Below are positions 5,950 through 46,479 of a DNA stretch of 64,000 nucleotides, piece by piece (position 1 is the stretch's first letter; every line of letters starts with the position of its first letter). Source of the DNA: Paramoeba atlantica (lineage: Eukaryota; Protista; Discosea). The stretch spans positions 62,001-126,000 of the forward strand of contig CDRNVI010000066.1 of assembly GCA_977017575.1 (NCBI GenBank). The letters run 5' to 3'. The translations under genes were made by a program, and so were the position numbers. The notes beneath the pieces are model-generated. The model was not told the origin of the DNA. It worked only from the letters and a program-made list of their open reading frames with translations, and did no database searches.

Positions 5950-8097
5950 CTCTCTTTCTCCCCGGCGCAAACCCATGACGGCGACGTCGGCGTGACCACC
6001 GGGGATCCAAGGATTCCGCTACTGGGCTTAACACCCCATCATCCTCGACCTCAGGGGGACCTGCTACCACCCCTCTCAGACGAGACTCCAGCCCCCACCC
6101 CTCCCTAGGGGTCGAGGGGCTGCACCAGCTCTCCATCGAGGGGCTGAAGAAGGTGAGGCCGGACTTGGTCGTCCGAGTCAAGGAGCAGCACAAGCCATGT
6201 GCCTGCGACTTCTGTGGCCCCCCTTTCGTGCCAATCAGGCGGGACAACCGCCTGCGTGATGAGTGCGTTACTCTGCGCTCTCGGCACAGGAACGACATAA
6301 GAGTGCGTGCTTCGACGGAAGCCTCTGGGACCCCTCCATCCCGTCCCACGTCTTCCTCTCGATCCTCCCGCGCCAACTCCACGGCTAGTAAGGATCACAC
6401 GTTCTTCTTCCTCTCGGGGCCGATCCCGGAGCTTTGACCGTATAGGTACTACGGTGGCCCCTACCCCCATCCTGAGGAAAGCAGCCAACGTTTCCTTCGC
6501 TCCTCTCCCCACCTCCGACAGTCGGAGCACGTCCTACGCCCGCATCTCGGCGCCTGGCCTGGCGACCGCCCCCCGATCACGTCGGAAGCGATGGATAGCG
6601 ACGCCGCAGCCCCGATGGAGCGTCCGCTGAAACTCCCCGCGCTTGCGCAGAAGTTCAAGGCGATGGACGCTGTGCGCCTCAAACTCCTCCCCACCCTTTC
6701 TAGTTCGGGGCTCCCTCTAGCTCAAACCGGAAGATGCTCTGTCTCTCTGCGTCTCCTTTCGGCCCTACACTCAGAGCACGAGAGGATCTCCCTTGAGGAA
6801 ATGGAGACCCGGGCACGCCGTGAGCTGACCCTGGAGGCTGTCAGTGGTCTGCACGCGGCCCAGAAAGCCATCGAGGATCGCTTTCTACTGATCAATGCGG
6901 GCCATTTGGTATGCATTGAATGTGGGGTAGCCCAACCCCACCATGTAGCTTTACAGGCGCACCTAGTAAAGGTGCACGGTCCGAAGCGGCTAAGGAAAGC
7001 GTCTATTGCCCTGCTAAAGGAGCATGCCCCTGAAGTCCTCCGGATCAAAACGGAGCGGTACGCCTCCATGCTGGCGTACTATGAGGGGTTCTGCGCTGAG
7101 GAAGCCCGCTTGCGCATGGCCCAGGTCAACACAGTGGCTAAAGGACCTCCATGGCCCGTGCCCCCCCTACGCTCCTTCCCTCTCCCCATTCCCAACTCCC
7201 CTCCTCCTTCCCCCCCATCTCTACCGGCGGACAGGTCGGGCGCGTACCCGATACAGACGAGAGCACCCATTGGGGAAGTCCCGGATAAACCACACGAGCC
7301 GGTAGGGGAAGAGGTCCTCAAAATCCACCTCGACATTGGCCCCGAGCGCTTGGGTCATATAGTCATTCCCTGTCCGCCCGAACGCTCGTTTCAAGCTACA
7401 ATCAGCATTGTGGGCAACACTTTAGGGGTCCCCAGAGAGAGCCTGCTGCTGAAGGACATCTCCGGCGAAGCCACCCCCATCACCGACTGGGAAGGGCTGG
7501 ACAGAGCGCAAAGAGTCGCGGTCAGCCTCTCCCTTCCCCCCTTTCCCCCCCAGGGCCTAGCGATGGGGCCACTGTCAGGGTGTATGACGGGACACACCAC
7601 GGCATGGTCTCCGCCCCAGGGGTGAGTGCGGCGCAAGACATCCCCGCCGGTCTGAACGAGGTCTTGGGTATCGCCCGGATCATGACCGGTGCCTGGGAGC
7701 CCCGCAACTACGAAGAAGGGCTCCTTTGGTGTTTCCTTCCCACAGAAACCCTGGTAAGCGAAACGGGCTGAACCACCCCTCGGGAAGCCGGATGCAACAT
7801 GGTCCGGGGGGACTGAAACTTCTGGGGGCGTACGTAGGCGCCACGGAAGCGAGGGAAGAGGAATGGGTCCTCTCCAAGGTCCCCAAGGTCACTAATTTCT
7901 TGGGTAAACTCAAGGATTTACCGAGACAGTGTGCCCTTCCTCTCCTCCGCCTATGCGGGAGCTCCGGTGGAACTTCATAGTTCGCACGCACGAACCGGGG
8001 GTGACCAAAAAGGCGAACCTGCAGGTGGACGCGGCCATCACCGCATGCTCCGAAGCTCTTATCGGGGGGATGGGTGCAATGGGAACGACACCGTTCG
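5950..8097 (+). mobile_element. CRE-clade non-LTR retrotransposon copy 1, 5' part (internally deleted, degenerate); 5' boundary approximate
   Basis: ORF 6591-7625 has a C2H2 finger (CIECGVAQPHHVALQAHLVKVH) and aligns with copy 2 (KEHAPEVLRIK; WCFLPTETLVSETG). At about 7775 it jumps to GSRMQHGPGGLKLLGAY...LPRQCALPLLRLCG, skipping the RT core present in copy 2. Confidence 0.8.
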
Positions 8098-8234
8098 TAA
8101 ATAAAGTTTTTAGTAAAAAGTTTTTAGTAAAAGTTTTTACGTCGGACTTCCTGGGCGTTGTTTGTTCATACTATTGCATAATAGCAGAGAGTTTTCAGGG
8201 TAAGGCCCGCATACAACGGGATAACCCTTTTTAT

Positions 8235-9536
8235 TTAGCAAGCAGAGCGGTTTTCCTCGTCCGTCCATTCAGCTTCGTTCCTCCGAGCCCAGATAATATA
8301 GCTGGCCCGACCAGCCATTAAACTCATGCTTTCTCTGCATGATCTGGCTCGTTTTCGTTCCCCTTGGAACACGGCGTCAAGATAGCGACAGGATCCGCTA
8401 GGAAGTCCCCGTGCGCCGATCTCGAACGCTAGGGCGTAGCAGTTCGGGTTCTCGATTCTGCGCTCGTGGAGAAGTGAGTTATACTTCTCTGACTTCCGCC
8501 GGTGTGCGTTTTCGCAGTTCTCCTCCCACGGGACAGTTAGCTCAATGATGAACTCGGTCCCGTTCCGTAGTTTGATCCAGCCATCCGGGCGCAGTAAACT
8601 GTCGCTACTGGTGTACCACGGGGGTGGGTTCCGTTCACCCGTGAGGTCAAAGTGGCAAGCTTCGGTGGCAGGGGATTGGCGTACGTGTCGTGCGAACTCG
8701 CGGAGAACCATGTCGTGTCTTAGTGTGTACCTCCCTTGTTGTAAGGATGTGTTGCATGATGAAAGGACGTGTCTTGTTGTTTGTGGTTTGTCTCGGCATA
8801 TGGGACATTTTGTATCAGAGTGATAGTTGCGACCCCATTGTGCAAGGGATACTCGGGAGGGCAGGGGGGTTAGAGTCATGACGGAGGACATGAATCGCGA
8901 GAGTTTCTCGTTTCGGATCCCATGGATGGCAGATGCAAATTCTTGTGCCATTTCTGGGTCTGACGGAAACTGCCACCAGAGGGCAGCAACAGGAGCACGT
9001 TGTCGTAGACGTGTAATCATTTGTTCTTCGTGGGCATCACGGAGTATTTGTCGTGCGCGCTGTGGGTCGTTAAGATGATCGGTTATCTGTGCAGCTGGGC
9101 GGATTTGACCTTTCGCACGCTTCCTTTGCTCTTCCTGGATGCGGAAGCGCAATGCCTTGAGCACGTTCGGGTCTCGTGATTGATGCATTTGGGTAAGTGA
9201 CGTTCCGGTGCACTCGTACCAGAGTTGTGTCAGACTTTTGAGATTCCAGCCGCGGCAGGAGTATAGTACTTCTGTGCTACCGGCACGAGCCATGTTAATC
9301 CATCGTCGAATGTGTGCTGTGACTCGCTTCTGAAGCCGCAGAACTGAGCTGAAAGAGATGCAGGGGTGGATGGTAAACTGAAACCGAAGTCGGGAAATTA
9401 TAGCGTGTCTGTAGATCCACAGCTTAGCCGGGAGATTATGGGCGCTGGCACTCGTGTTTTCGAGCCATCCCTTCAGCTTTGAGTTTAATTTCTTGAAAAG
9501 TTCGTTTAGCTGCTGAGATCCAGGGGCGAGGGTCAT
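8235..9536 (-). CDS. Element A ORF, C-terminal part: RT thumb, zinc knuckle, restriction-like endonuclease
   Basis: GWNLKSL, CCHC knuckle, RYTLRHDMVL, PD...E...K endonuclease, FEIGARG. Confidence 0.88.
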   Translation of the reverse strand: MTLAPGSQQLNELFKKLNSKLKGWLENTSASAHNLPAKLWIYRHAIISRLRFQFTIHPCISFSSVLRLQKRVTAHIRRWINMARAGSTEVLYSCRGWNLKSLTQLWYECTGTSLTQMHQSRDPNVLKALRFRIQEEQRKRAKGQIRPAAQITDHLNDPQRARQILRDAHEEQMITRLRQRAPVAALWWQFPSDPEMAQEFASAIHGIRNEKLSRFMSSVMTLTPLPSRVSLAQWGRNYHSDTKCPICRDKPQTTRHVLSSCNTSLQQGRYTLRHDMVLREFARHVRQSPATEACHFDLTGERNPPPWYTSSDSLLRPDGWIKLRNGTEFIIELTVPWEENCENAHRRKSEKYNSLLHERRIENPNCYALAFEIGARGLPSGSCRYLDAVFQGERKRARSCRESMSLMAGRASYIIWARRNEAEWTDEENRSAC

Positions 9537-9558
9537 ACCAAGAAATGAGCTTCCGGCG

Positions 9559-12500
9559 TCACAAATATGTGGAATTTTTTTCTCCGTATGTGGTTACTGC
9601 AGGTCTTCTCGTCATGTACCCCGGGTGCTCTTCGCCTTTCCGCGTGCTCATACATTGGACTCGACTTTTTGTGACGTTGATTTTTAATCCGATTTTGGAG
9701 AGCACCGTGGTTAGTGCGTTCAGCGAAGTTTGCACGTCACGGTCACTTTCGGTCAGAATGGTTAAATCATCGGCATACGCTTTCAAGAAGTTGTTATCGC
9801 CGTTGGGAAGGCGCATGCCAAAGGTTGGACACGAGAACCGAACGTATCGTAATACGATTTCCATGACTACTAAGAATATAGTGGGGGAGAGTGTATCGCC
9901 TTGTAAGACTCCCTTCTTTACATGTATGGGACGCGTTAGACCTTCGTAACATTTAACTCGTATGTGTGCATCAGTGAGGCTGTCTTTGATGTAGTCGACA
10001 ACGTTGCAGGGTATGCCTGCCCAACCTAGGGAAGCTAGTATAATGTTATGCGGGATCGAACCAAAGGCGTTAGTGAGGTCCAATTGGGCCAGACAGTACT
10101 GTCGTTTATGTCGCTGGTAGTGCTGGAGGAGGGTGCATAGAGTTTGGGTGTGCTCCAATGTCCCATTGATTTCGGGAAGAAACCCTTTCTGTATTTCCGG
10201 GTCAATCACATTGTGTCCAATAAGATGTTGGGTCAGGCGATGCGATATGATTGTGTGGAACGCTTTACCAAGGGCGCTCGTCAGTGAAATGGGGCGCCAA
10301 TTTTTGGGGTTTTCCGGTGCTCCGCTCTTATGTATCAGCCTAGTGATTGCAGTTTTCCATGATGGAGGGCAGGTCGAGAAAGTCATCAGATTATTGAATA
10401 CCTTAGCAAATTGATCATGCATGGATGGACATTTCTTAAGAATCAGATTGGTGATCGTGTCTGCACCGGGTGAGCTGGAGTTCCGTTTCATATTGATGGC
10501 TGCTGTGACATCGTCTCGCGTGATTGGGTCCCAATGCATGGGTTGGGCGGCTCCTGGTCCGAGTACATCTGGAGGAGGCAGTTGGAAGAGTTCTTCACTG
10601 GGTTTAAAGCTGGACTCGAAGTATGTCTCTATGGTGTTCCGGTCGCAGGTCGGGTAAGTTGTATTCTGTACTTCATTAGCGTCAGGTTTGTCGATCGTTT
10701 CTGAAGCTGCTGTCCACGGATTTCTGGAAAATCGCTCGGAGGCCCAGCGCTGATCGATTTCTTCTCTTTGTTTCGTCGCTTCTTCCTCACGTATCCTGAC
10801 TAGCTTTCGACATTCTTTGATTTGTGCTCGTAATTCGTCTCGTTCCGTCCTACTTCTCGTATAGCGTAGCGAAGTTTTCAAGGTTGTGAGATGGTGTTTC
10901 AGTTCTTGTGCGACTCTCTCCGTGGCGAGTGGTCGATACCTTCGTCGGGCGTGTCCGGTGCTAGCTCTGATGAGGAAGCCCCTTGTCGGATTCGCTTCCG
11001 TCGCTATTTCGTAAGCAGATACGGCTAGGGCGGCGCTAAGAAGTTCCGCGTTACGTATAGCTGTCTTCCTGTCCGTTGTATCGCTTAGAAGTTCGTTGCA
11101 ACGTGCACTTGCTCTCGCTTCAACCTGTCGCCATTGCTCTTCGCTGAGTCGTATGGTAACCTTCCCGCCAAGTATTGCATTGTGCTTTTGCAGGAGTTCT
11201 ACTGCTTTTTGACTTTGAGAGGCGTCAGATTGCACGGTCGGCGTGGAGGGTTCAACTTGGGAATGTATGTTATTGGGTACTGTTGTTGGGGATTCACAAC
11301 TGGTTTCGTTCCCTGGTGCATAGGGTGGCCCAAATACTTTGCAACATAGGTGTGCGCACTCAAGTTTGTTTCGACACGTGTGGCGGCATGGCTGCACAGT
11401 GCGCAGTGTCGGTGCACTACGGTTCTGTTGAATGCGACTCGGTGATGCTTCTCTGCGTGAGATACGTTCGTAACTGACTTCTTCCGCTTCCTCCAGTCTT
11501 CGATGTACTGTAATGCGTAGATGTCTGAGATGTGGTATATCCATTCCGTTAAGCGCCTTCATGACTGCACGGCCTAGTGCTCCCGCTGTTGCATACTTCT
11601 CGTTGAGTTTAAGTGTATTATCTTGGAGAAGGGATGTCCAGCTGGCATGCCGACTGATGTGTTGACTATTTTGTTCTTCGATATGTATGTAGTCGCATCC
11701 GCGGTGGTCCATGAGTTCTTCAGTTGTGGAAGGCTCGACAACCAAGTCATGAGAGTTGCTTTTACCAGATAACATTTTCGAGAGTGCCGCTTGTGCTGCT
11801 TGGAGAGAGGTTATTCTAGCCCGGACGAGAGGAGATTCGCTGGCACTTCGAATATCTGGAAAGTATGTCCAGATCAGGTTTGCTACTGTTCGCACTTTCA
11901 CGGGGCGGGCTCTGCTCTGGACAAAGTGAAGGTATTGCTTTTGCCGTGGTTCATGGTTTGTGTCAGGTGGTGCGGATTCGTCCCGGTTCTGTGTCGCGCT
12001 GCTTTGAAATACCCAGCCAGGGACTTCATCGTTTTCTCCTTCCTGTTCCCTGGGACAAGGCATGATTAATTCTTGCTTTTCCGTCAGCTTTTCCACCTCG
12101 TACATCTCATTGTGGTTAAGCGTGACTGTTGGGTTTGCTGGTAAATAGGGATTGCTTTCTTTCTCGACTGCAGTCGTGAATGGCTGGGATGATGTGCATA
12201 GTTTCGTGGGGCTTGTGGTTGCGGGTTCTGGTTTTCCGTCATTTTGTGGCATAGTGTCTACTTGTATATAGAAAAGCCTGATATACCAGAGAATTATTCG
12301 TTGTGCAAGTTTCATGATGTCAAGAGCGGTCATGCTCAGTGGTTGCTTTTTCAACCGTGCGACGTTTGAACAAAATTTCTCGTGCATTATTCGTATCCGG
12401 GGCAGTAAAAGCAGAGGCGATGGGAAAATGTCATACGTTTTTGTGCAAGAAGAAGTAATGAACCTGATGGTACTACCTATGCACACATATACCATGTTCA

Positions 12501-13281
12501 TACATTGGACAATGTGTAATGGGTTTGCTGCTTCAGAAAGCCAACCAGTTAATAGGGACAATAGGGTTTGAGTGTTCCTTGTGATGACTAGTAGTACGTG
12601 ACCAAAGGGTCCATTGTTTGTTGGCACCACATTTATGACTTTCTTCTGGGAGTGTCGTATATGACGTTTGCAACAAGGGTGTTTGCAGATGACTTTGTTC
12701 AGACAGATGTGCCTACACGGTTTTGTCGTGATACTTTGTGTGCCAACATTTCGACGGAAAGGATTGAGGGCGTTGGGTGACGGGATTGCGCGGATGGGTG
12801 CTACTAGGAGGTGAACGGCGAGGCTAGATATCCATCTGAAGACGTTAGATATGATGATGCCAATATTCCGCATGTTGTAGAGAGTTCTGAATACTAGTAT
12901 AATTGATCGGGCCATGGCAAGCGGGGAGACTTCAAAATTCCTTCGTTTCTTTGACATAACGGTATGTGATGTTACGGTGTCGCTATCGGTTATACTTTGC
13001 GCAGTTAAGTGACGCTTGCAGCACAAGTGTAAGCATTCACGTTTATTCAGACACTTGTGCTTACAGGGTTCCGCTGGGGACGATGCGGTGGTATTCGCCG
13101 AATTGCCAGTCACATGCTCGGTTTGCGTGACGTTTAGCAGATTGTCGGGAGTACTTCCGTTCTCGTTGGAAGAGGCGTCAGGATGGGTGGGAGTTGCGCT
13201 TTGCTTGCGAACGCCGCGTGGTCCTCGTGTAAGGTCCTGCGGCGCATTCGAGTGGGATCGTTGCGCGCGGTGTCGCGCCAT
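9559..13281 (-). CDS. Element A ORF, N-terminal part: three CxHxC..CxHxCCK fingers, unknown domain, reverse transcriptase
   Basis: 1240-aa ORF. It ends in an A7 run; removing one A gives GEKIPHICDAGSSFLGM, which joins the next ORF and matches element B (GKAIPHICDRGSTFLGM). Confidence 0.88.
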   Translation of the reverse strand: MARHRAQRSHSNAPQDLTRGPRGVRKQSATPTHPDASSNENGSTPDNLLNVTQTEHVTGNSANTTASSPAEPCKHKCLNKRECLHLCCKRHLTAQSITDSDTVTSHTVMSKKRRNFEVSPLAMARSIILVFRTLYNMRNIGIIISNVFRWISSLAVHLLVAPIRAIPSPNALNPFRRNVGTQSITTKPCRHICLNKVICKHPCCKRHIRHSQKKVINVVPTNNGPFGHVLLVITRNTQTLLSLLTGWLSEAANPLHIVQCMNMVYVCIGSTIRFITSSCTKTYDIFPSPLLLLPRIRIMHEKFCSNVARLKKQPLSMTALDIMKLAQRIILWYIRLFYIQVDTMPQNDGKPEPATTSPTKLCTSSQPFTTAVEKESNPYLPANPTVTLNHNEMYEVEKLTEKQELIMPCPREQEGENDEVPGWVFQSSATQNRDESAPPDTNHEPRQKQYLHFVQSRARPVKVRTVANLIWTYFPDIRSASESPLVRARITSLQAAQAALSKMLSGKSNSHDLVVEPSTTEELMDHRGCDYIHIEEQNSQHISRHASWTSLLQDNTLKLNEKYATAGALGRAVMKALNGMDIPHLRHLRITVHRRLEEAEEVSYERISRREASPSRIQQNRSAPTLRTVQPCRHTCRNKLECAHLCCKVFGPPYAPGNETSCESPTTVPNNIHSQVEPSTPTVQSDASQSQKAVELLQKHNAILGGKVTIRLSEEQWRQVEARASARCNELLSDTTDRKTAIRNAELLSAALAVSAYEIATEANPTRGFLIRASTGHARRRYRPLATERVAQELKHHLTTLKTSLRYTRSRTERDELRAQIKECRKLVRIREEEATKQREEIDQRWASERFSRNPWTAASETIDKPDANEVQNTTYPTCDRNTIETYFESSFKPSEELFQLPPPDVLGPGAAQPMHWDPITRDDVTAAINMKRNSSSPGADTITNLILKKCPSMHDQFAKVFNNLMTFSTCPPSWKTAITRLIHKSGAPENPKNWRPISLTSALGKAFHTIISHRLTQHLIGHNVIDPEIQKGFLPEINGTLEHTQTLCTLLQHYQRHKRQYCLAQLDLTNAFGSIPHNIILASLGWAGIPCNVVDYIKDSLTDAHIRVKCYEGLTRPIHVKKGVLQGDTLSPTIFLVVMEIVLRYVRFSCPTFGMRLPNGDNNFLKAYADDLTILTESDRDVQTSLNALTTVLSKIGLKINVTKSRVQCMSTRKGEEHPGYMTRRPAVTTYGEKNSTYL

Positions 13282-13312
13282 GTAGATTTAAACGATAAAG
13301 AAATAAAGAAAT

Positions 13313-13344
13313 CAACAAGGTACAGAAACTGTATCTTTATCGTT
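13313..13344 (-). other. Spliced-leader-like sequence at 5' end of element A
   Basis: Minus strand AACGATAAAGATACAGTTTCTGTACCTTGTTG contains the kinetoplastid SL core ACAGTTTCTGTAC and ends in TTG, 31 nt before the ATG. Confidence 0.8.
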
Positions 13345-13382
13345 CCATCCCCTTCTCGTTTTTACCTCATCTTTATCGTCTC

Positions 13383-14300
13383 CATCCCCTTCGAAGACAA
13401 GGTGGAGGACATGCAGGCCAAAGCTGTCAAGGCCTTACAAGGTCGGCGCCCCGGCACACCCGCCAGGGAGCAGCGACGCGCTTATGGGGCGGCTGATTTG
13501 GACAAGGCACCGTTGGACAAGGCCACGCATCTGGTCTGCATGCGCCAGATCCAGAACATCCACTCGACCAAGTGGATGAATGCGTGGCTAAATAGGCCGG
13601 AGTACTACATGCGGGATCCAGAATGGGAGACCGCTGCTAGACTCCGGTACATGGTGGCCCCCACCTCCGAATCTGAAATGCAATGTGTGTGCGGCGCGGC
13701 CCTCAAAAATGAGGATTTCTGCGTCCACGCCATGGATTGTAAAAAGGTTCGGGGGAAGACACAAGCCTCTCTCCACAAGGGGGTCAATGAAACTTTCCGC
13801 AACCTACTAATCCAGTATGGTTTCACCACGGACCTGGTCGAACCTAGGTTCGGCAACGGGTGGGGACCGGACATCTGTTTCCTTTTGGGGTGGAAACTAG
13901 TCCTAGTGGACGTGACGGTGGTGAACCCACTGGCACCGTCCTACGTGGATAAGGAGGCAGTTGAGCCCTCCTTCACCGTGAGCCAGGCTGAGCGCCTCAA
14001 AAGGCGCACTCATGAGGAAATGGCGGGGGCCAGGGAGATGGGTTTCTTCCCTTTGGCCTTCACCACTTACGGTGTCCCCGGCCCCGAGACCCTCAAGTTT
14101 CTAAATCTGGTAGCTCGGAAGGCCACTGGCGAGAAGAATGGTTGCCTCAGCCATTTTATCATGGCAATCGGGGTAGCCATCCAAAAGGGGAACGCCCAGA
14201 TAGCGCATGCCGCGGTACAAAACTGGTACCGTAGGGGAGTGCGCTAATGGGTTCGGGGGAATAATTTTAGTGTTTTGAGTGCCCTTAAAAACTTTAAAAA
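13383..14300 (+). mobile_element. CRE copy 1, 3' part (zinc knuckle plus RLE, stop at 14247, A/T tail)
   Basis: CVCG...HAMDC...LH knuckle, PDI...VLVDVTVVNPLAPSY...AERLK...FFPLAFTTYG, then TAAAAACTTTAAAAAACTT. Confidence 0.85.
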
Positions 14301-37807: not shown

Positions 37808-40427
37808 TATTTCCACCGGGCGCTCCCGCATAGGCGAAGAAGGGGAAGGGCGCACTGCCTGGGTAAGTCCTTCAGCTTACCCAAGAAGTTTGTGACCTTG
37901 GGAACCTTCGATAGGACCCATCCCTCTTCAAATGCTCCCGTGGCGCCAATATACGCCCCCAGAAGCTTGAACCCCCCCGGAGCATGTTGCATCCTGCTCC
38001 CCGAGAAGGCCGAGTACAAGTCCGGGTGGCGGGTAGCCACCATGCACTTGGCCGTGTTGAGCTTTAAGCCCAAAAACTTGATCTCCGCTTCCATGGAGCC
38101 AAGGGCATTTACGCACACCCCGGGCTCCGCGGCTAAGGTTATATCATCCAGATATGCCCATAGCTTTAGGCAGCCAGAGTATTTTGCCGCCACGGCCGAG
38201 ATGGCGCCCTGTATCCCTAAGGCGAACAGGATGGGCGCCATCGGGTCCCCTTGTTTCACCCCCCCGGGAGCTAGGGATGGCAATCCCCTCCCCCAGGTGG
38301 AGCTTGCTAGGGGTCCCGTACCCGAAAAGGGAGATCCCTATCATAGGGGAAAGGTTCGGATACCTTTTCAAAGCTCGGAAAATGGCCGCGCGGGAAATGC
38401 TGTTAAAAGCATTTTCCAGGTCGACCGCCACGACCACCTCGTCGGGCCTGTCACGGAAGTGGTCTCTCACTTCATACACGACGTGCTCGCATCCTTGGGT
38501 GTATTGGGCTCCGAATTGGAGGCCCTGGAACACAGCAGGGAGGTGGTCTCTGACCTGTTCAAGGGCTAGAAGACCCGCGAGCTTCAGGATGACCTCCCCC
38601 ATGGCTATGGGCCTATAGGATGAGTGATGTTCCACAGGGGCCCCAGGCTTGTTAAAGAGCTTGAGGTTGGCTCCCGTGAGGAAATCCCTCATCGTGGGAG
38701 GGAGGGAGCTCGTGAGGATCCCTTGGATGATCCAAGTGACCACGTCCCTCGGGTCGTCCTCCTGCAGGATGGGGACCAGGAGTTCTTTGGTCCATCCGGA
38801 CGGGCCTGGCGCTCTAAGCGGCGCAAGACTAGTTGCCTTACGGACAACGTCTGCCGCCGACGGGAGGGGTCCATGACATTCCTTTTCATAGACGAACTTG
38901 GGGGTGTTATAAGGACCTCCCGCTGGGTGGAGGCGTTTCACCTGTTCCCCCGCTGTAGCCGGGTTTGCCGGTGGATCGAGGGGGGCTTCCAAAATTTTAG
39001 CCGCCCTCGAGAAAGCCCCCGCCCGGATCAGCTCGATAACCCCTTTGATAACAGAACGGGGGAAGCTGTTGGTGAGGAGGGGATTTGGAGCGATGGATTC
39101 GGACCCCTCTAGGTGAGCCCGTTTCCGTAACTCCCTCGCCAACTGCCTCTGGGACAGCTTGTCCTCGGGGAAAAACAGGAATCGTTTGACCCCGAGAAGA
39201 AGATCCCAGGCGATTTTGGTCTTCCCTTCCTGCGACTTCCTCAAGAAGTCGCTACAGATAGATTTGACGTAGTCTTTCCACGCGGGGCATTGGACTGCGT
39301 ACAGTTTACGTAGTGAGCCCCTATCGAGGAGCTGGGCTAGGCTGTCCGGGGAAGGCGTGACGTTACCCTGCTCAGTGCCCGCGCCTTGGGTATGAGGGGG
39401 CGTGGCGCTGGGGGCCATGTCGGGGGGGTCCAGCCCTGCGCGGTGGGAGTACGGAGGCGGAGCATGGGAGGAAGATGCATGGAGAGGAGGGTGTTGAGGT
39501 GAGGTCACAGCCGCGATACCTTCCATGATAGTTCCTTCCCTGCTGTGGGAAGGGGCGTCGGGCTCCTGGAGGAGGGCACTCGGGGTCTCGCTCGGTGCCT
39601 GCCGGGGCTGGGGGGCGGATGAGGCCAGCGACCCTCGGTTCTTGTGTCTGGGGCCAGGGTTTGCCTCGATGCATCCCCTGCGTAGATTGCATTTGACAAC
39701 CCGGGTGGTCCATCCCGTTTCGCTGACTAGGGTTTCTGTAGGGAGGAAACACCATAGCATACCCTCCTCGTATTCGCGAGGTTTCCAAGCTCCGGTCAGC
39801 ACTGGGGGAATACCGAGAATCTCACTCAGACCGGCCGGGATGTTGTGGGCCGCCTGTAGTCCGGGGGCGTTAATGAACCCGTACATGGATCCATCGTACA
39901 CCCAAATAACGGCCGCCTCGTTGTTACGGAGGTTGTACGGAGGTAGGGACAGGCTGACCACTACTCGTTGAGCGCGATCTAGGCCCTCCCGATCGGTGAT
40001 AGGGGTGGTTTCGCCAGCACTGTCTTTGAGGAGGAGATTTTCCCCAGGGACCCCTAAAGTGTTCCCCACTGTGCGGAGGAAAGCTTGGAAAGGGGAGTCC
40101 GGTGGGCAGGGGGTAGTGGCATATCCGGCACGCTCCGGCCCGAGATCGAGTAGGATCTTGAAGGGTTCTGAAACAGAGTCGACCAGGGGATTGGTTGGCG
40201 GTGCAGGTGTAGCCTGCGGGGGGATTAGCTTCGTCGCTATCCCGGGGAAAGGTGTGGGATGAGGGGGAGAACGAAAGGTGGGCTGGGGCCAGGGTGGGCC
40301 GCCAGCCATCGCACTCGCCTGTGCCCTTTGGAGGTGGGCCTCCATCGTGCAGAACTCCTCATATAGAGCCATGAAGGAGGAGAAGCGATCGGCCTTGATC
40401 CTGAGTGCTTCCGGGGCGTGTTCCTTT
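37808..40427 (-). mobile_element. CRE-clade retrotransposon copy 2, internal fragment (both ends missing)
   Basis: APGPSGW, YRPIAMGEVILKLA, QFG, DLENAFNSISR, then after a shift in a G run GVKQGDPMAPILF, AYLDDI, KLLGAY. No 3' endonuclease or tail. Confidence 0.9.
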
Positions 40428-40529
40428 TTTACATTTTTCAAATATTGGTTTGAACCAAGTATGTTTTCTTTTAGAGTGTCAGATTATTAAAAATACAAAC
40501 TTTTTTCACGGTTTTTCACTAAGAACTGC

Positions 40530-41628: not shown

Positions 41629-41650
41629 ATACAGTTTCTGTACCTTGTTG
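41629..41650 (+). other. Spliced-leader-like sequence at 5' end of element B
   Basis: ATACAGTTTCTGTACCTTGTTG, identical to the element A copy, 32 nt before ATG 41683. Confidence 0.8.
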
Positions 41651-44600
41651 AATATTTTTTTTTTCTAAACTGTATCTCCAACATGTCCGACAATCCCACT
41701 TCTCCGCGGAATGTTGACGATGCGCTGCCGGACCTCCCTCGAGCTTCCGGCGGCGTACAGACGCAAACCCTGCACTTCGTCCACAGCAGATCACGCCCCG
41801 TTAAGATACGACGCCTCACTGATCTGCATTGGACGTATTTCCCGGACATTAAGACCGCGATCCAATGGTCCATAGTCAGACAAAGAATTCCATCCCGACA
41901 AGGTGCGGAGTAGCTATCACGAAACTGCTGAGTAAGTGTGCATCAGCACACGATCTCGTAGCTGAACACACCACCTTTGAGGAGCTCGTGGAGCATAACG
42001 CGTGCGACTATATAAAGGTTACGAGGAATGAACACCCCTACACCATCTCCCTGCACCCAAACTGGGTCTCGATGCACGCCGACCCTGCCCTCAGCCTGCG
42101 AGACAAGTATTCCACCCCAAGCACGCTCAATAAGGCAGTCCTGAAGGCCTTACAGGGAAGAGAAATATCGGGACTGAAGCACATAAAAATCGAGCTCATA
42201 AGAAACCAGGAAACACCAAGCACTGAAACCGCGGAATATGAGAAGCCGCGCAGGATAGAAGAATCTCCTCATAAAATCGCTCCCCCACGAACGCCAAAGC
42301 CCCAGAAGGGTAAAACTGATCAACACAAGGGACCGTGCAAGCACCGCTGATTGAGCAAACTCTCCTGTGCTCACAAGTGCTGTAAAATCTATGGACCGCT
42401 GCCGAGTGAGGACGTTACATATTGCTCATCAGAAGGAGCACTGCCACCTGAGATCGTCCCAGAAGGAACCGCAAATAACACCAACCCAGGAGATCCAAGT
42501 AAATATACGCCGGAAAGCACCTCTTCGGAACCTGCGACACATACAAAATGCAACACACATGCGTTGAACGGTCACCGCAAACCTACCGTACATGATGAAC
42601 CTTCCGCCCCGCATCCATGTCGTCATTCCTGCAAGAACAAAGCTACGTGCGGACATCTATGTTGTAAACGAGGCATTAAATCTTCGCATCTGGACTTTCC
42701 AACTTCCGCGACTTCTACAAATGAAAATCTACAAACGAAGCTATGCAACGCAATATCACGGGAGGGCGCCCATACAACTTTAGAACGCGGGTTAAACCCG
42801 GCAACACAACCTCCACCTGATGTCCAAATGGTCCCACCTGCCGAGGGAACCCAAACAGAGGGGGCCGACGTCAACCAGAACTCCGTAACACCAAACCTCA
42901 ACGACAACGATAGTGATTTCCTACTGAAAGCTGCTAAATTGGCTGGTTGGGCCATGCGTAACGTTATAAACTTCTACCGCCTTCCCAATACTAGCATCAA
43001 CGGACCAACAAACGGGAACCAACATACTGTGCAAATAACGGATGCGACGTGCACTGACAACAAAGATAGCACTATGCACAACCCTGCGCCACTCCCTGAA
43101 GCGACGCCTAGCAGTGCAGCGCATTACCCACAGAACACCGTACACGTGGAACCATGTCGTCACCGATGCTCGGCCAAGCTACGCTGTCTGCATAAATGCT
43201 GTAAGATATATGGACCGCTTAGGTACAATGAGCCCCTCGTCCGACCTTCTCCTCTTCCTCCTCCTTCGCACACTACGGAACTTCGAGTTCCATCATGGGA
43301 TGAAACCAGCGAAAGGGAGCGCCTCCATCTGCTTGAACAACTCAAAACCATAACAGGGGGAAAAATGTGCCTAAAGCTTAACGACGATCAATGGAAGGCG
43401 GTTGAAAACAAGGCATACGATACATGCCGAAGGCTGCAATATCCAACAGTAGACACCCCGGAAATCGCAGTGAAAAACGCAGAACTCCTGGGTGCCTCTC
43501 TGGCAGTGGCGGCATACGAAATTGCACAAGAGATTAACCCCACTAAAGGTTTCCTCACGCGATCGAAACGCGGACACGCCCGATTCAAGCACCGGCCACT
43601 TTCGTCTGAAAATGCAGCCCACGAAATGACGAAACACATACGCAACCAAAAGAAATCACTACGCTACACACACGGAACGGAACGCCAAGAGCTCCGTCGC
43701 TGCATTAAGGAAAGTGAGAAGCTAGAGAAAGCATACACAGAAGAGGCCAAAGCACATAGGAAACAGCTAGAAAGACAATGGGCCCATAGCAGATTCACGC
43801 GGAACCCGTGGACAGCAGCATCCGAGGCCTTGGACCGCCCCTCGACCTCCGCCACCGCCGAATATCCTGAATGCGATTTACCTACGATAGAAAAATATTT
43901 CACAGAAAGCACAGCACCTCCCTCCGAAGAGCATCGCCTGCCGCCGAACAACGTACTTGGTCCTATACCCATCAAAGAAATGGAATGGTCTCCACTGACC
44001 GCGCAAGATGTCGAAGACGCGCTCAGCAGCAAAAGAAGCGCAAGCGCGCCAGGGCGTGATACGATTACAAACGCACTTCTAAAACAATGCAAATACCTGT
44101 ACCCCCGTATAGCGAACACGTTTAATGATCTTCTGCGCTACGGCGTCTGCCCGCCATGCTGGTCCTCCGCCGTAGTTAAACTCATTCACAAAGGAGGCGA
44201 AAAACACATCCCGAAAAACTGGAGACCTATCTCCCTGACTAGCGCTCTAGGCAAACTTTTCAATAGCATGATCGGACACCAAATTTTGACGCATACCGTG
44301 TCCTCCGGCCTCCTAGATACAAGCGTTCAAAAAGGCTTTCTTCCGAAGATGAGTGGTACACTGGAACACACGCAAGCTCTCTCCGAAATACTACAATATT
44401 ACCGCCGAAACAAAAGGCAATATTGTCTCACGCAGTTTGATCTCAGCAATGCATTCGGCTCGGTCCCCCATAGCATCATCTTCGAGGCACTGCGATGGGC
44501 AAACGTCTCGCCACAAATCGTGTCCTACGTTGAAAGCATGTATTCACATGCGGAAATGCGTATTAAGTGTGTCGAAAGTTTGTCACGTGCTATACCGATA

Positions 44601-46375
44601 CACAGAGGCGTACTACAAGGTGATACCCTGTCGCCCATAATTTTCAACTTAGTGATGGAAACTGTACTACGATACCTCAAGCAATCGTGCCCCCGGTATG
44701 GCCTTGACTACCCAGATACTCCAAGGCATTTCCTGAAAGCCTACGTTGACGACCTGACGATACTGACTAGCAGCGATACCGACTAGCAGCGATACCGACA
44801 TGCAGCACGCGACCAACACACTCGAAACTGCACTGAGACGAATAGGACTCTCAATCAACGTAGACAAGAGCCGTACACAGTGCATGTCCATGCGTGAAGG
44901 CAGTGAGCACCCGGGGTACATGACCAGGAAGCCGAGACTCAGTATCGAAGGCAAAGCGATACCACATATATGTGACCGTGGAAGCACTTTTCTTGGAATG
45001 ACCATAGCACCAGGAGCACAGCAAGCGAAAGAACTTTTCAAAAAGCTGGATGTCAGACTAAGAACATGGCTTCGGAATGTCGACGAGAGTGCACACAGTC
45101 TCCCCGAAAAACTTTGGATCTACAACAGAGCGATCGTATCCCGTCTGCGCTACGCCCTCACCGTTCACCTGTGTGTCACTTTCAACTTTGTATTGCGATT
45201 GCAGAAAAGAATTACACGTCACCTTAAGAAATGGATCAATGCAGCATCCACGACTTGCACCGAAATTCTTTATACTGAACGAGGGTGGAACCTTAAGAGT
45301 TTATCCAAGCTGTGGTCGGAATGCTCTATCCTAGCCTTAACACAGATGCACAAGTCGCGGGACCCATCGATACAGGCGGCACTACGAGCCCGAATCAAGC
45401 AAGAAGAAGAAAAACGATCCTCTGGTTATATTCGTCCAAGCGCTGACGCCATTCAACACCTTCATGACGCGCGGAAGGCGCAACAGATAGCCCGTGATCA
45501 CCATGAATCTTACGTCATAAATCAGCTTCAGAGACGGGCACCGACAGCAGCAAAATGGTGGAGCCTCCCCTCCGAGGCTGATCTCGCGAAAGAGTTCTCA
45601 GCAGCCCTGAACAACCTCAACAGTGAAAAACTTTCTCGCTTCGCAGCTTCAGTACTAACGCTTTCACCCCTACCATCCAGAACCAATCTTCGGCTTTGGG
45701 GTCTCCGGCGTGCGAGTGTAACGTCCCATATGTAAACTCGAACCTCAAACAACAAGGCACGTGCTCTCGGGGTGCAAAGAGTCCCTTCAGCAAGGGAGAT
45801 ACACCCTCCGTCATGACATGTTACTTGAAGAGCTCGGAAAACACTTGCAGCGTTCGCCGTATACCAAGAGCGTACACCTAGATATCCCCGGATTTAGGAA
45901 TGCCCCGGCATGGCTCGGCACCCGTGAGGATCTTCTTAGCCCCGACGGTTTGATTACACTTAAGGATGGAAGTGAGTTCATCATTGAGCTCACTGTGCCC
46001 TGGGAAGAGAACCAGTCTCAGGCGCACGAGGGCAAATCCCGTAAATATAATGCTCTCTTCCATGAACGACGCATTAATCACCCTAGGACGACCCTTGTTG
46101 TATTCGAAGTGGGAGCCCGCGGCTCGTTACTCACATCTTGTCGAAACCTCAATCTCCTCTTTGACAAGGACACAAAGCTTGCGGAAAAATGTCGAGAAAG
46201 TCTAATGCAGACCGCCCTTCGAGGCAGTTTCATCATCTGGCAGAACCGCGAGTCTGCCGTTTGGACAGAAGGACGGGTATAACGTCTGTAAAAGATAGGT
46301 CTGGGCAGCGTCATATGCGCCCCCCAGGCCTATCCGCATATTCTCTGCCTTATAAAGGTATGATAAATTAAAAAT
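41629..46375 (+). mobile_element. RLE-type non-LTR retrotransposon B (same family as A), inactivated; 3' boundary approximate
   Basis: Fragmented ORF 41683-46282: three Zn fingers, RT (NWRPISL, DLSNAFGSVPH, GVLQGDTLSP, AYVDDL), RYTLRHDMLL, PDG...IIELTVPWEEN, FEVGARG; premature TGA, frameshifts and a 16-bp duplication. Confidence 0.92.
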
Positions 46376-46479
46376 GAGACAAGGCGCGAGAATAGGTGCT
46401 GTCAGCGTGACGTTCATCCATTCCTCTTTGCACCGTGTTATCTCCCCATAGCGACACGGTGAGTAGGGGTTTATGCCCC

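Follow-up and report, generated by a model that had tools for sequence, protein, structure and literature searches.

The window, that is, the whole 64,000-nucleotide stretch of DNA analysed here, contains two non-LTR retrotransposons of the restriction-like endonuclease (RLE) type, element A on the minus strand and element B on the plus strand, and both begin with a piece of the spliced leader (SL) of the host. The string ATACAGTTTCTGTACCTTGTTG followed by A is found on the minus strand (13344/13334..13312) and on the plus strand (41629..41651); the common leader-like start that an earlier note on this DNA had claimed for A and B thus reads as described at both sites. The window contains two copies of the 13-nt core of the kinetoplastid SL, where 0.06 would be expected, and none of 100 shuffles gave two. 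The length of the shared leader, put at 22 nt, was correct for B, whose head (41629..41650, plus strand) is 22 nt long and corresponds to host SL nt 17-38; in A, however, the leader similarity extends 10 nt further upstream (AACGATAAAG...), and the real match is 32 nt (AACGAT..., 13344-13313). The head of A (13313..13344, minus strand) is therefore host SL nt 7-38, identical to the exon of the SL RNA gene. Each head is followed by a T-rich 5' UTR, of 31 nt in A (13282-13312, minus strand, with the ATG at 13281) and 32 nt in B (41651-41682, plus strand, with the ATG at 41683), and both lengths are those proposed earlier. It was likewise borne out that no GT intron, as in an SL gene, follows either head and that the flanks of neither element are SL genes. 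On the upstream side, an (ATTAT)n microsatellite directly precedes the head of B, and a complex 5' junction is present in A (13345..13400, minus strand), in which the flank sequence GAAGGGGATGGA and the SL fragment ACGATAAAGAT (13369-13379) each occur twice; such a duplication of flank and SL fragment was seen also in L075 and L083.

Element A is full length (8158..13344, minus strand, 5187 bp), its ends being set by comparison with the copy L091, and it terminates in ...GAACAAACAA with neither poly(A) nor a target duplication. Its ORF is split by one frameshift near 9540 into a first part of 1240 aa (9559..13281, minus strand), comprising the N-terminal region and the reverse transcriptase, and a second part of 433 aa (8235..9536, minus strand), comprising a linker, a CCHC knuckle and the restriction-like endonuclease. 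The motifs in this second part are a CCHC of the form CPIC...H....C, RHD, and PDG...ELTVP.E...K..KY. The reverse transcriptases match Pfam RVT_1 (E 4.9e-30 for A and 1.2e-24 for B), the closest solved relative of the reverse transcriptase part of A is Bombyx R2 (8gh6, E 4e-26), and a profile of the C-terminal part of A aligns (E 3e-12) to residues 928-1155 of the R2 protein 9nl3, which form its RLE domain; the R2 proteins 8gh6, 9nl3 and 9dou are the best structural and sequence relatives. The earlier assignment to the RLE type is confirmed, with a reverse transcriptase, a CCHC motif and a PD-(D/E)XK nuclease of R2 type all present. Element B (41629..46376, plus strand) is degraded, with its ORF in at least five pieces and an approximate 3' end. 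A and B had been taken for members of a single family; at 49-57% protein identity, they represent two. Moreover, the two proteins align only from residue ~447 of A onward, and the leader is therefore joined at quite different points of the two proteins. The surroundings of the two insertions consist of a microsatellite and of LRR-type or other genes, and no common sequence was found on reading the flanks of 10 independent A and B copies. Three tandem copies of a ~13-nt TAAAAACTTTTAC-like string lie just past the 3' end of A (8095-8135, minus strand) and belong to the flank, not to A; in DNA contigs, a TAAAAACTTTTAC-like string also turns up as a loose end on the upstream side of A. At 38144-40441 (minus strand), the window has a third ORF for a reverse transcriptase, with a weak RVT_1 match and no leader core in its vicinity.

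The host leader itself was read from the SL RNA genes, in which a constant upstream region is followed by the 38-nt exon and then by GTATGAG and a structured intron. The full leader is AACTTTAACGATAAAGATACAGTTTCTGTACCTTGTTG, and the 22-mer shared by A and B is its 3' end. Across the genome, the exact upstream region plus exon was found at 31 sites and the exon plus GTATGAG intron at 36 sites, and ~33 SL RNA gene units match over 520 nt. The SL RNA genes form arrays of roughly 2.56 kb on small contigs and are linked to 5S rRNA genes, one of which lies on the opposite strand in every repeat unit (99 bits; L050:975-1093 and L064:975-1093, both minus strand). The SL RNA is predicted to fold (z -5.7) into three stem-loops, the first of which contains the 5' splice site. 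At G000:C11:~3794 there is a variant SL gene whose exon differs by a single change, GTCCC in place of GTACC. Among 30 randomly listed core sites, the core always lay within the conserved 38-nt AACTTTAACGATAAAGATACAGTTTCTGTACCTTGTTG, and the sequence beyond it differed by family. A relation to the host SL, which the earlier note had set as its test, accordingly holds: the sequence at the head of both elements is identical to the host's own SL exon, and CTTGTTG, which was to be compared with TTTATTG, is the normal exon end here as given by the SL RNA genes. Linkage of SL and 5S rRNA genes has been described for bodonids, according to an entry in the reference list of PMC2621209.

Comparison of the copies of each family across the genome bears directly on how the heads arose. 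Family A is represented by five full-length 5' ends, 97-100% identical, plus a truncated copy, and family B by seven copies at 98-100% identity and two old ones. The independent heads measure 32, 32, 22 and 26 nt in family A and 22, 30, 27, ~25, 32 and 27 nt in family B, and further RLE families, taken from a second assembly of this organism, have heads of 32, 29, ~28, 27 and ~23 nt. The start point lies within SL nt 7-17 in each of more than 15 independent RLE-type heads (six families), and none extends beyond nt 7. The junctions between leader and UTR vary as well: an extra 16-nt or 10-nt repeat of the leader end is present in two copies of family A, a 7-nt repeat or TTG repeats in two copies of family B, and the first UTR base differs in each A copy. 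Several 5' junctions, that of A included, repeat a piece of the flank together with a piece of the leader. The upstream flanks of the A and B copies are unrelated, except for three copy pairs in duplicated loci, which excludes 5' transduction. Because near-identical copies carry different heads and do not share their flanks, the head of each copy arose during its insertion, from an RNA template that started with the SL. These data indicate, with a high degree of confidence, that A and B are cDNAs of RNA bearing the leader and that the head was not merely inherited as DNA.

The same observations weigh on the third of the models put forward earlier, in which the head belongs to the element, either as an inherited mimic of the SL or as an internal promoter that restarts transcription at its first base. 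The SL sequence of nematodes is itself a promoter element, and, consistent with such a role, full-length heads of other families stand after unrelated DNA or A-runs with no promoter upstream, and at least 22 nt are kept in all A and B heads. The head is, however, identical to the host SL and hence no mimic, so that the proposal failed its own test, which called for a leader differing from that of the host. Furthermore, the heads of A and B lack nt 1-6 or more (nt 1-6 in A, nt 1-16 in B), and unequally so among near-identical copies, which rules out self-regeneration; inheritance would predict steady erosion and, through read-through templates, shared flanks, and the only shared flanks are those of the duplicated-locus pairs. 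In addition, SL nt 2 is misread in copies, as it would be from a modified RNA. An element-owned head is thus regarded as very improbable indeed.

The SL-headed state is not confined to A and B. In the 45.7-Mb genome, 811 occurrences of the SL core were counted compared with 2 of a reversed control, and SL nt 3-38 are intact at 341 sites. Hundreds of retroelement copies start with the leader, and they belong to many unrelated families, among them LINE-like, RLE-type, tyrosine-recombinase and SINE-like ones, and what had been presented as the distinctive trait of one family is instead a genome-wide property of many. Neither chance nor an assembly artefact explains this pattern, since the reversed control is so much rarer and the second assembly contains the same junctions. 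The other reverse-transcriptase families usually carry the leader from nt 1-3; several of them have an LsmAD-like N-terminus (weak Pfam matches, below the curated cut-off), and their heads are often immediately preceded by an A-run or by another element's poly(A) tail. Among 23 distinct near-full-length heads of these families, SL nt 2, the base before CTTTAACG, is T in 11, A in 7, C in 3 and G in 2 (L005-L028, L058, L060 and L073), and it is A in every SL gene. The kinetoplastid leader carries a modified cap 4, and the misreading at nt 2 is likely to be the footprint of this modified region on reverse transcription.

Some further arrangements of leader copies were observed. Two different leader-headed elements lie head to tail at L031:268-4421 and at L006/L007, where the second leader, together with a partial duplicate of its first 13 nt, adjoins the poly(A) of the first element. 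Two leader copies are inverted back to back (L029/L030, G000:C2:553054-553097) and may have arisen by snap-back during reverse transcription. A SINE-like non-coding family (L044-L072; for example G000:C3:18107 and C4:128703) starts with 25-28 nt of leader, after which come GTACATTTT... and a conserved hairpin, and one of its copies is inserted in a B-family element (L092:~6240). The sites at which the SL is followed by GT (177 in number) were considered as candidate SL genes and mostly rejected, since they belong for the most part to this SINE-like family.

It remains to be asked how the leader was joined to the element RNA, and the reading preferred here, which we consider somewhat probable, is that it was added to the RNAs of A and B by trans-splicing. 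Each A or B copy would have been reverse-transcribed from an element RNA with the host SL at its 5' end, where it would most likely have been placed by ordinary trans-splicing, as for every mRNA here. The R2-like enzyme would copy this RNA into the leader, never past nt 7, and the 5' end would then be joined to the target with variable loss, so that head length (22-32 nt) and junction would be particular to each insertion; in both A and B, the SL mini-exon of the host would in this way have been written into DNA. For A and B themselves, we infer rather than observe both trans-splicing and the location of its acceptor. Evidence comes from elsewhere in the genome: for four of four families with an unspliced homologue in the DNA examined, copies exist both of the form T-rich...AG|X and of the form SL|X, and the chance of four out of four junctions falling at AG is about 1.5e-5. 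Such pairs of AG|X and SL|X are a direct fossil of trans-splicing in these four other families, and they show that RNAs of this genome are indeed trans-spliced and then reverse-transcribed. Among the four is a tyrosine-recombinase element located in a 5093-bp tandem array, and two of the four display a duplicated [X]-SL-[X] arrangement, which suggests that in these two families replication restores the upstream acceptor. The heads, moreover, stop exactly at the 3' end of the exon, ...CCTTGTTG, and the sequences beyond diverge by family. In contigs of a probable RNA run under the same species label, the leader is located near contig ends and joined to other UTR and ATG sequences, which provides weak support; that run matches only the leader part, and three other runs are DNA-like, with contigs that break at the repeat.

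The genomic copies of A and B themselves do not display the acceptor that this reading calls for. No polypyrimidine-AG acceptor before the UTR was found in genomic A or B copies, every full-length copy being SL-headed, and the UTRs of A and B contain no AG. Also against precise splicing, the element-side junction shifts by 1-11 nt at non-AG positions within LINE families. The first of the earlier models, in which the RNA is trans-spliced, is nevertheless the best supported of the three: heads vary among near-identical copies and four other families keep paired acceptor-bearing and SL-joined forms, but no acceptor was found in A or B.

A clean junction between SL and UTR with no acceptor would be accounted for if the active source copies sat exactly at the exon end of SL RNA genes and were transcribed from the SL promoter, so that their RNA would begin with a capped SL and need no trans-splicing; the dispersed copies, A and B included, would then be dead-on-arrival progeny. 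RLE lineages classically inhabit highly transcribed RNA genes, as exemplified by R2, SLACS/CZAR/CRE and NeSL, and one sequence of precisely this construction was found. At G000:C41:280357-280939, 482 nt of SL-gene upstream sequence (99% identity), including most of the linked 5S gene region, is followed by the complete exon and then by the 5' UTR of an LsmAD-type LINE of the L017 family, which replaces the intron. Consistent with a source of this kind, neither AG nor GG precedes the UTR of the L017 family in any genomic copy. For A and B, in contrast, none of five A-family and none of nine B-family 5' ends lies in an SL gene, and an intron follows 30 of the 31 exact promoter-bearing exons, the sole exception being C41, which involves a different LINE family. 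A run of T acts as the terminator in trypanosomatid SL genes, and the UTR of B opens with a run of 9-11 T, which would also count against transcription from an SL gene. The C41 fusion, known from 280357-280939, could itself be a by-product of recombination through 38-nt homology. A protein-database search directed towards a copy of the C41 type returned only a 98% match, P0125, in a copy with no SL nearby. This second of the earlier models therefore finds a counterpart in the fused LINE at C41, which is of another family, and none among the A and B copies, and as the origin of the leader on A and B it is unlikely.

Tandem partial repeats of the 3' end of the leader stand between leader and UTR at 95 sites genome-wide, and each of them ends at SL nt 38. 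By an approximate hand tally of the matches listed, the 10-nt repeat TACCTTGTTG is present at ~38 sites and the 7-nt repeat CTTGTTG at ~19, neither of them after an AG; a 16-mer repeat, at ~13 sites, begins right after the leader's own AG at nt 21-22, and a 22-mer repeat, at 2 sites, begins after the AG at nt 15-16. There are a few composite repeats, and some repeats are separated by 1-3 extra bases. In family A, repeats are found at G000:C36:43292-43320 and C60:59380-59402. If a new leader were spliced onto the AG of an old head, a relict of 16 or 22 nt should result, and the rarity of these relicts (about 15 of 811 sites, ~2%, one of them in family A) counts against the trans-splicing reading. 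The 10- and 7-nt repeats look like enzyme slippage or template jumping, and the variable element-side junctions and spaced repeats look like template jumps of the enzyme rather than precise splicing.

Such jumps could in principle supply the leader by themselves. The element RNA would start within the T-rich UTR, and the reverse transcriptase would jump from it to the 3' end of the SL exon, the donor being the free exon intermediate of trans-splicing or a similar RNA, in the manner of a U6/L1 chimaera. Template jumping is a known property of the R2 and L1 enzymes, and the 95 repeat sites, with lengths that cluster at 10, 7 and 16 nt and with 1-3 extra bases in some, fit this mechanism, as do the variable SL|UTR junction base in family A and the 4- and 11-nt shifts of the junction in two other LINE families, in no case at an AG. 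Capture of this kind, however, requires an RNA that ends exactly at SL nt 38, and the free SL exon is a rare and short-lived intermediate. Backward slippage on an ordinary SL-UTR template, through G/TG microhomology, explains the 3-, 10-, 16- and 22-nt repeats equally well, and in all four families with an unspliced homologue the junction lies at AG. Capture of the leader by the enzyme is thus judged quite improbable, and trans-splicing is retained as the preferred reading for A and B.

The 5' UTRs of the RLE elements contain short stretches complementary to the leader. In A, the 11-nt TCTTTATCGTT (13291-13301, minus strand) is the reverse complement of SL nt 7-17, and in B the 11-nt AAACTGTATCT (41667-41677, plus strand) is the reverse complement of SL nt 15-25; an antisense match of this length was reached in 0 of 200 shuffles for A and 0 of 200 for B. 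The motif of A also survives in two copies of a sister family (73% identical), the UTR of which is otherwise different, so that antisense 11-mers occur in the RLE families A, A2 and B (further sites at L087:~2385 and on the minus strand of L093). Hairpins are predicted between SL and UTR, but their stability exceeds that obtained with shuffled UTRs only modestly (z -1.3 for A and -0.8 for B; -3.1 for the sister family). A general antisense-SL rule was rejected, as 38 other SL-headed UTRs did no better than shuffles. It is possible that the motifs in the RLE families are functional, either by pairing with the leader in cis or by recruiting SL RNA in trans. Taken together with the fusion at C41, they raise the tentative and rather doubtful possibility that LINE-type elements here do without a conventional acceptor and obtain the leader either through a master copy fused to an SL gene or through an antisense-SL guide in the UTRs of A, A2 and B. 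By the first route, the SL promoter at the fused master may deliver a genomic RNA that is ready-capped and already bears the leader; by the second, the 11-nt antisense guide may pair with the leader and thereby recruit SL RNA or form a 5' hairpin recognised by the protein of the element. If either is true, the host leader is an integral working part of the retrotransposon.

In kinetoplastids, polycistronic transcripts are cut and each piece is capped with the spliced leader. To our knowledge, the ways in which kinetoplastid retrotransposons solve the problem of their 5' end are known only from trypanosomatid parasites, and these are an internal promoter combined with a ribozyme, or residence in the SL genes. 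The SL-headed elements described here represent a third solution for a translatable 5' end, and one used on a large scale. In the literature searched, no description of SL-headed retrotransposons in kinetoplastids was found, and searches with the leader sequence were likewise empty for this species. The heads naturally mark full-length insertions, give a record of each enzyme's reach into the hypermodified cap, and keep splice junctions preserved in DNA. In addition, the fusion of SL gene and LINE, the antisense-SL motifs and the repeat hot spots make re-acquisition of the leader by LINEs directly testable.

In architecture, A and B are like SLACS, CZAR, CRE1-2 and NeSL-1, with a reverse transcriptase, a C-terminal CCHC motif and a restriction-like endonuclease, and with a link to the SL; the one LINE copy fused to an SL gene also recalls these elements. 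SLACS, CZAR, CRE1-2 and NeSL-1, however, occupy a fixed site inside the SL exon and have SL-gene flanks on both sides, whereas A and B lie in unrelated DNA and retain no more of the exon than its 3' 22-32 nt, exactly up to the splice point, with the intron absent. With animal R2, A and B share variable 5' junctions with small duplications and the absence of both poly(A) and a regular target duplication, but R2 is freed from the 28S co-transcript by a self-cleaving ribozyme, while the 5' end of A and B is the host SL. The L1Tc/ingi elements of trypanosomatids carry the Pr77 internal promoter and an HDV-like ribozyme (PMC1874656, PMC3185411). These too are kinetoplastid non-LTR elements that need a defined translatable 5' end under polycistronic transcription; L1Tc, however, makes unspliced transcripts from its own promoter, and the elements here have the SL instead. 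Mammalian U6/L1 chimaeras (PMC11838501) are head-to-tail joins of RNAs made by template switching and resemble the present heads in that the latter often stand right after the poly(A) tail of another element; unlike in those chimaeras, the leader here ends at the splice junction and not at the natural 3' end of an RNA, which points to splicing.

A further resemblance is to the retrogenes of dinoflagellates, for which relict SLs and 'mRNA recycling' have been described (Slamovits and Keeling 2008, as described in PMC3229502 and PMC5585692); in these relicts, according to PMC3229502, a new leader has been spliced onto the AG of the old one. In both cases, an SL acquired at the RNA level has been returned to DNA by retroposition. 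The dinoflagellate type of relict, cut at the SL's own AG and standing after a full SL, corresponds here to the 16- and 22-nt repeats at ~15 sites; unlike in dinoflagellates, these AG-type repeats are a small minority (~2%), and the commonest repeats, of 10 and 7 nt, do not begin after an AG. The carriers also differ, being mainly autonomous retrotransposons and their non-coding partners here and host genes in dinoflagellates. Altogether, the phenomenon resembles the mRNA recycling of dinoflagellates and adjoins the RLE elements specific to SL genes, and is equal to neither.
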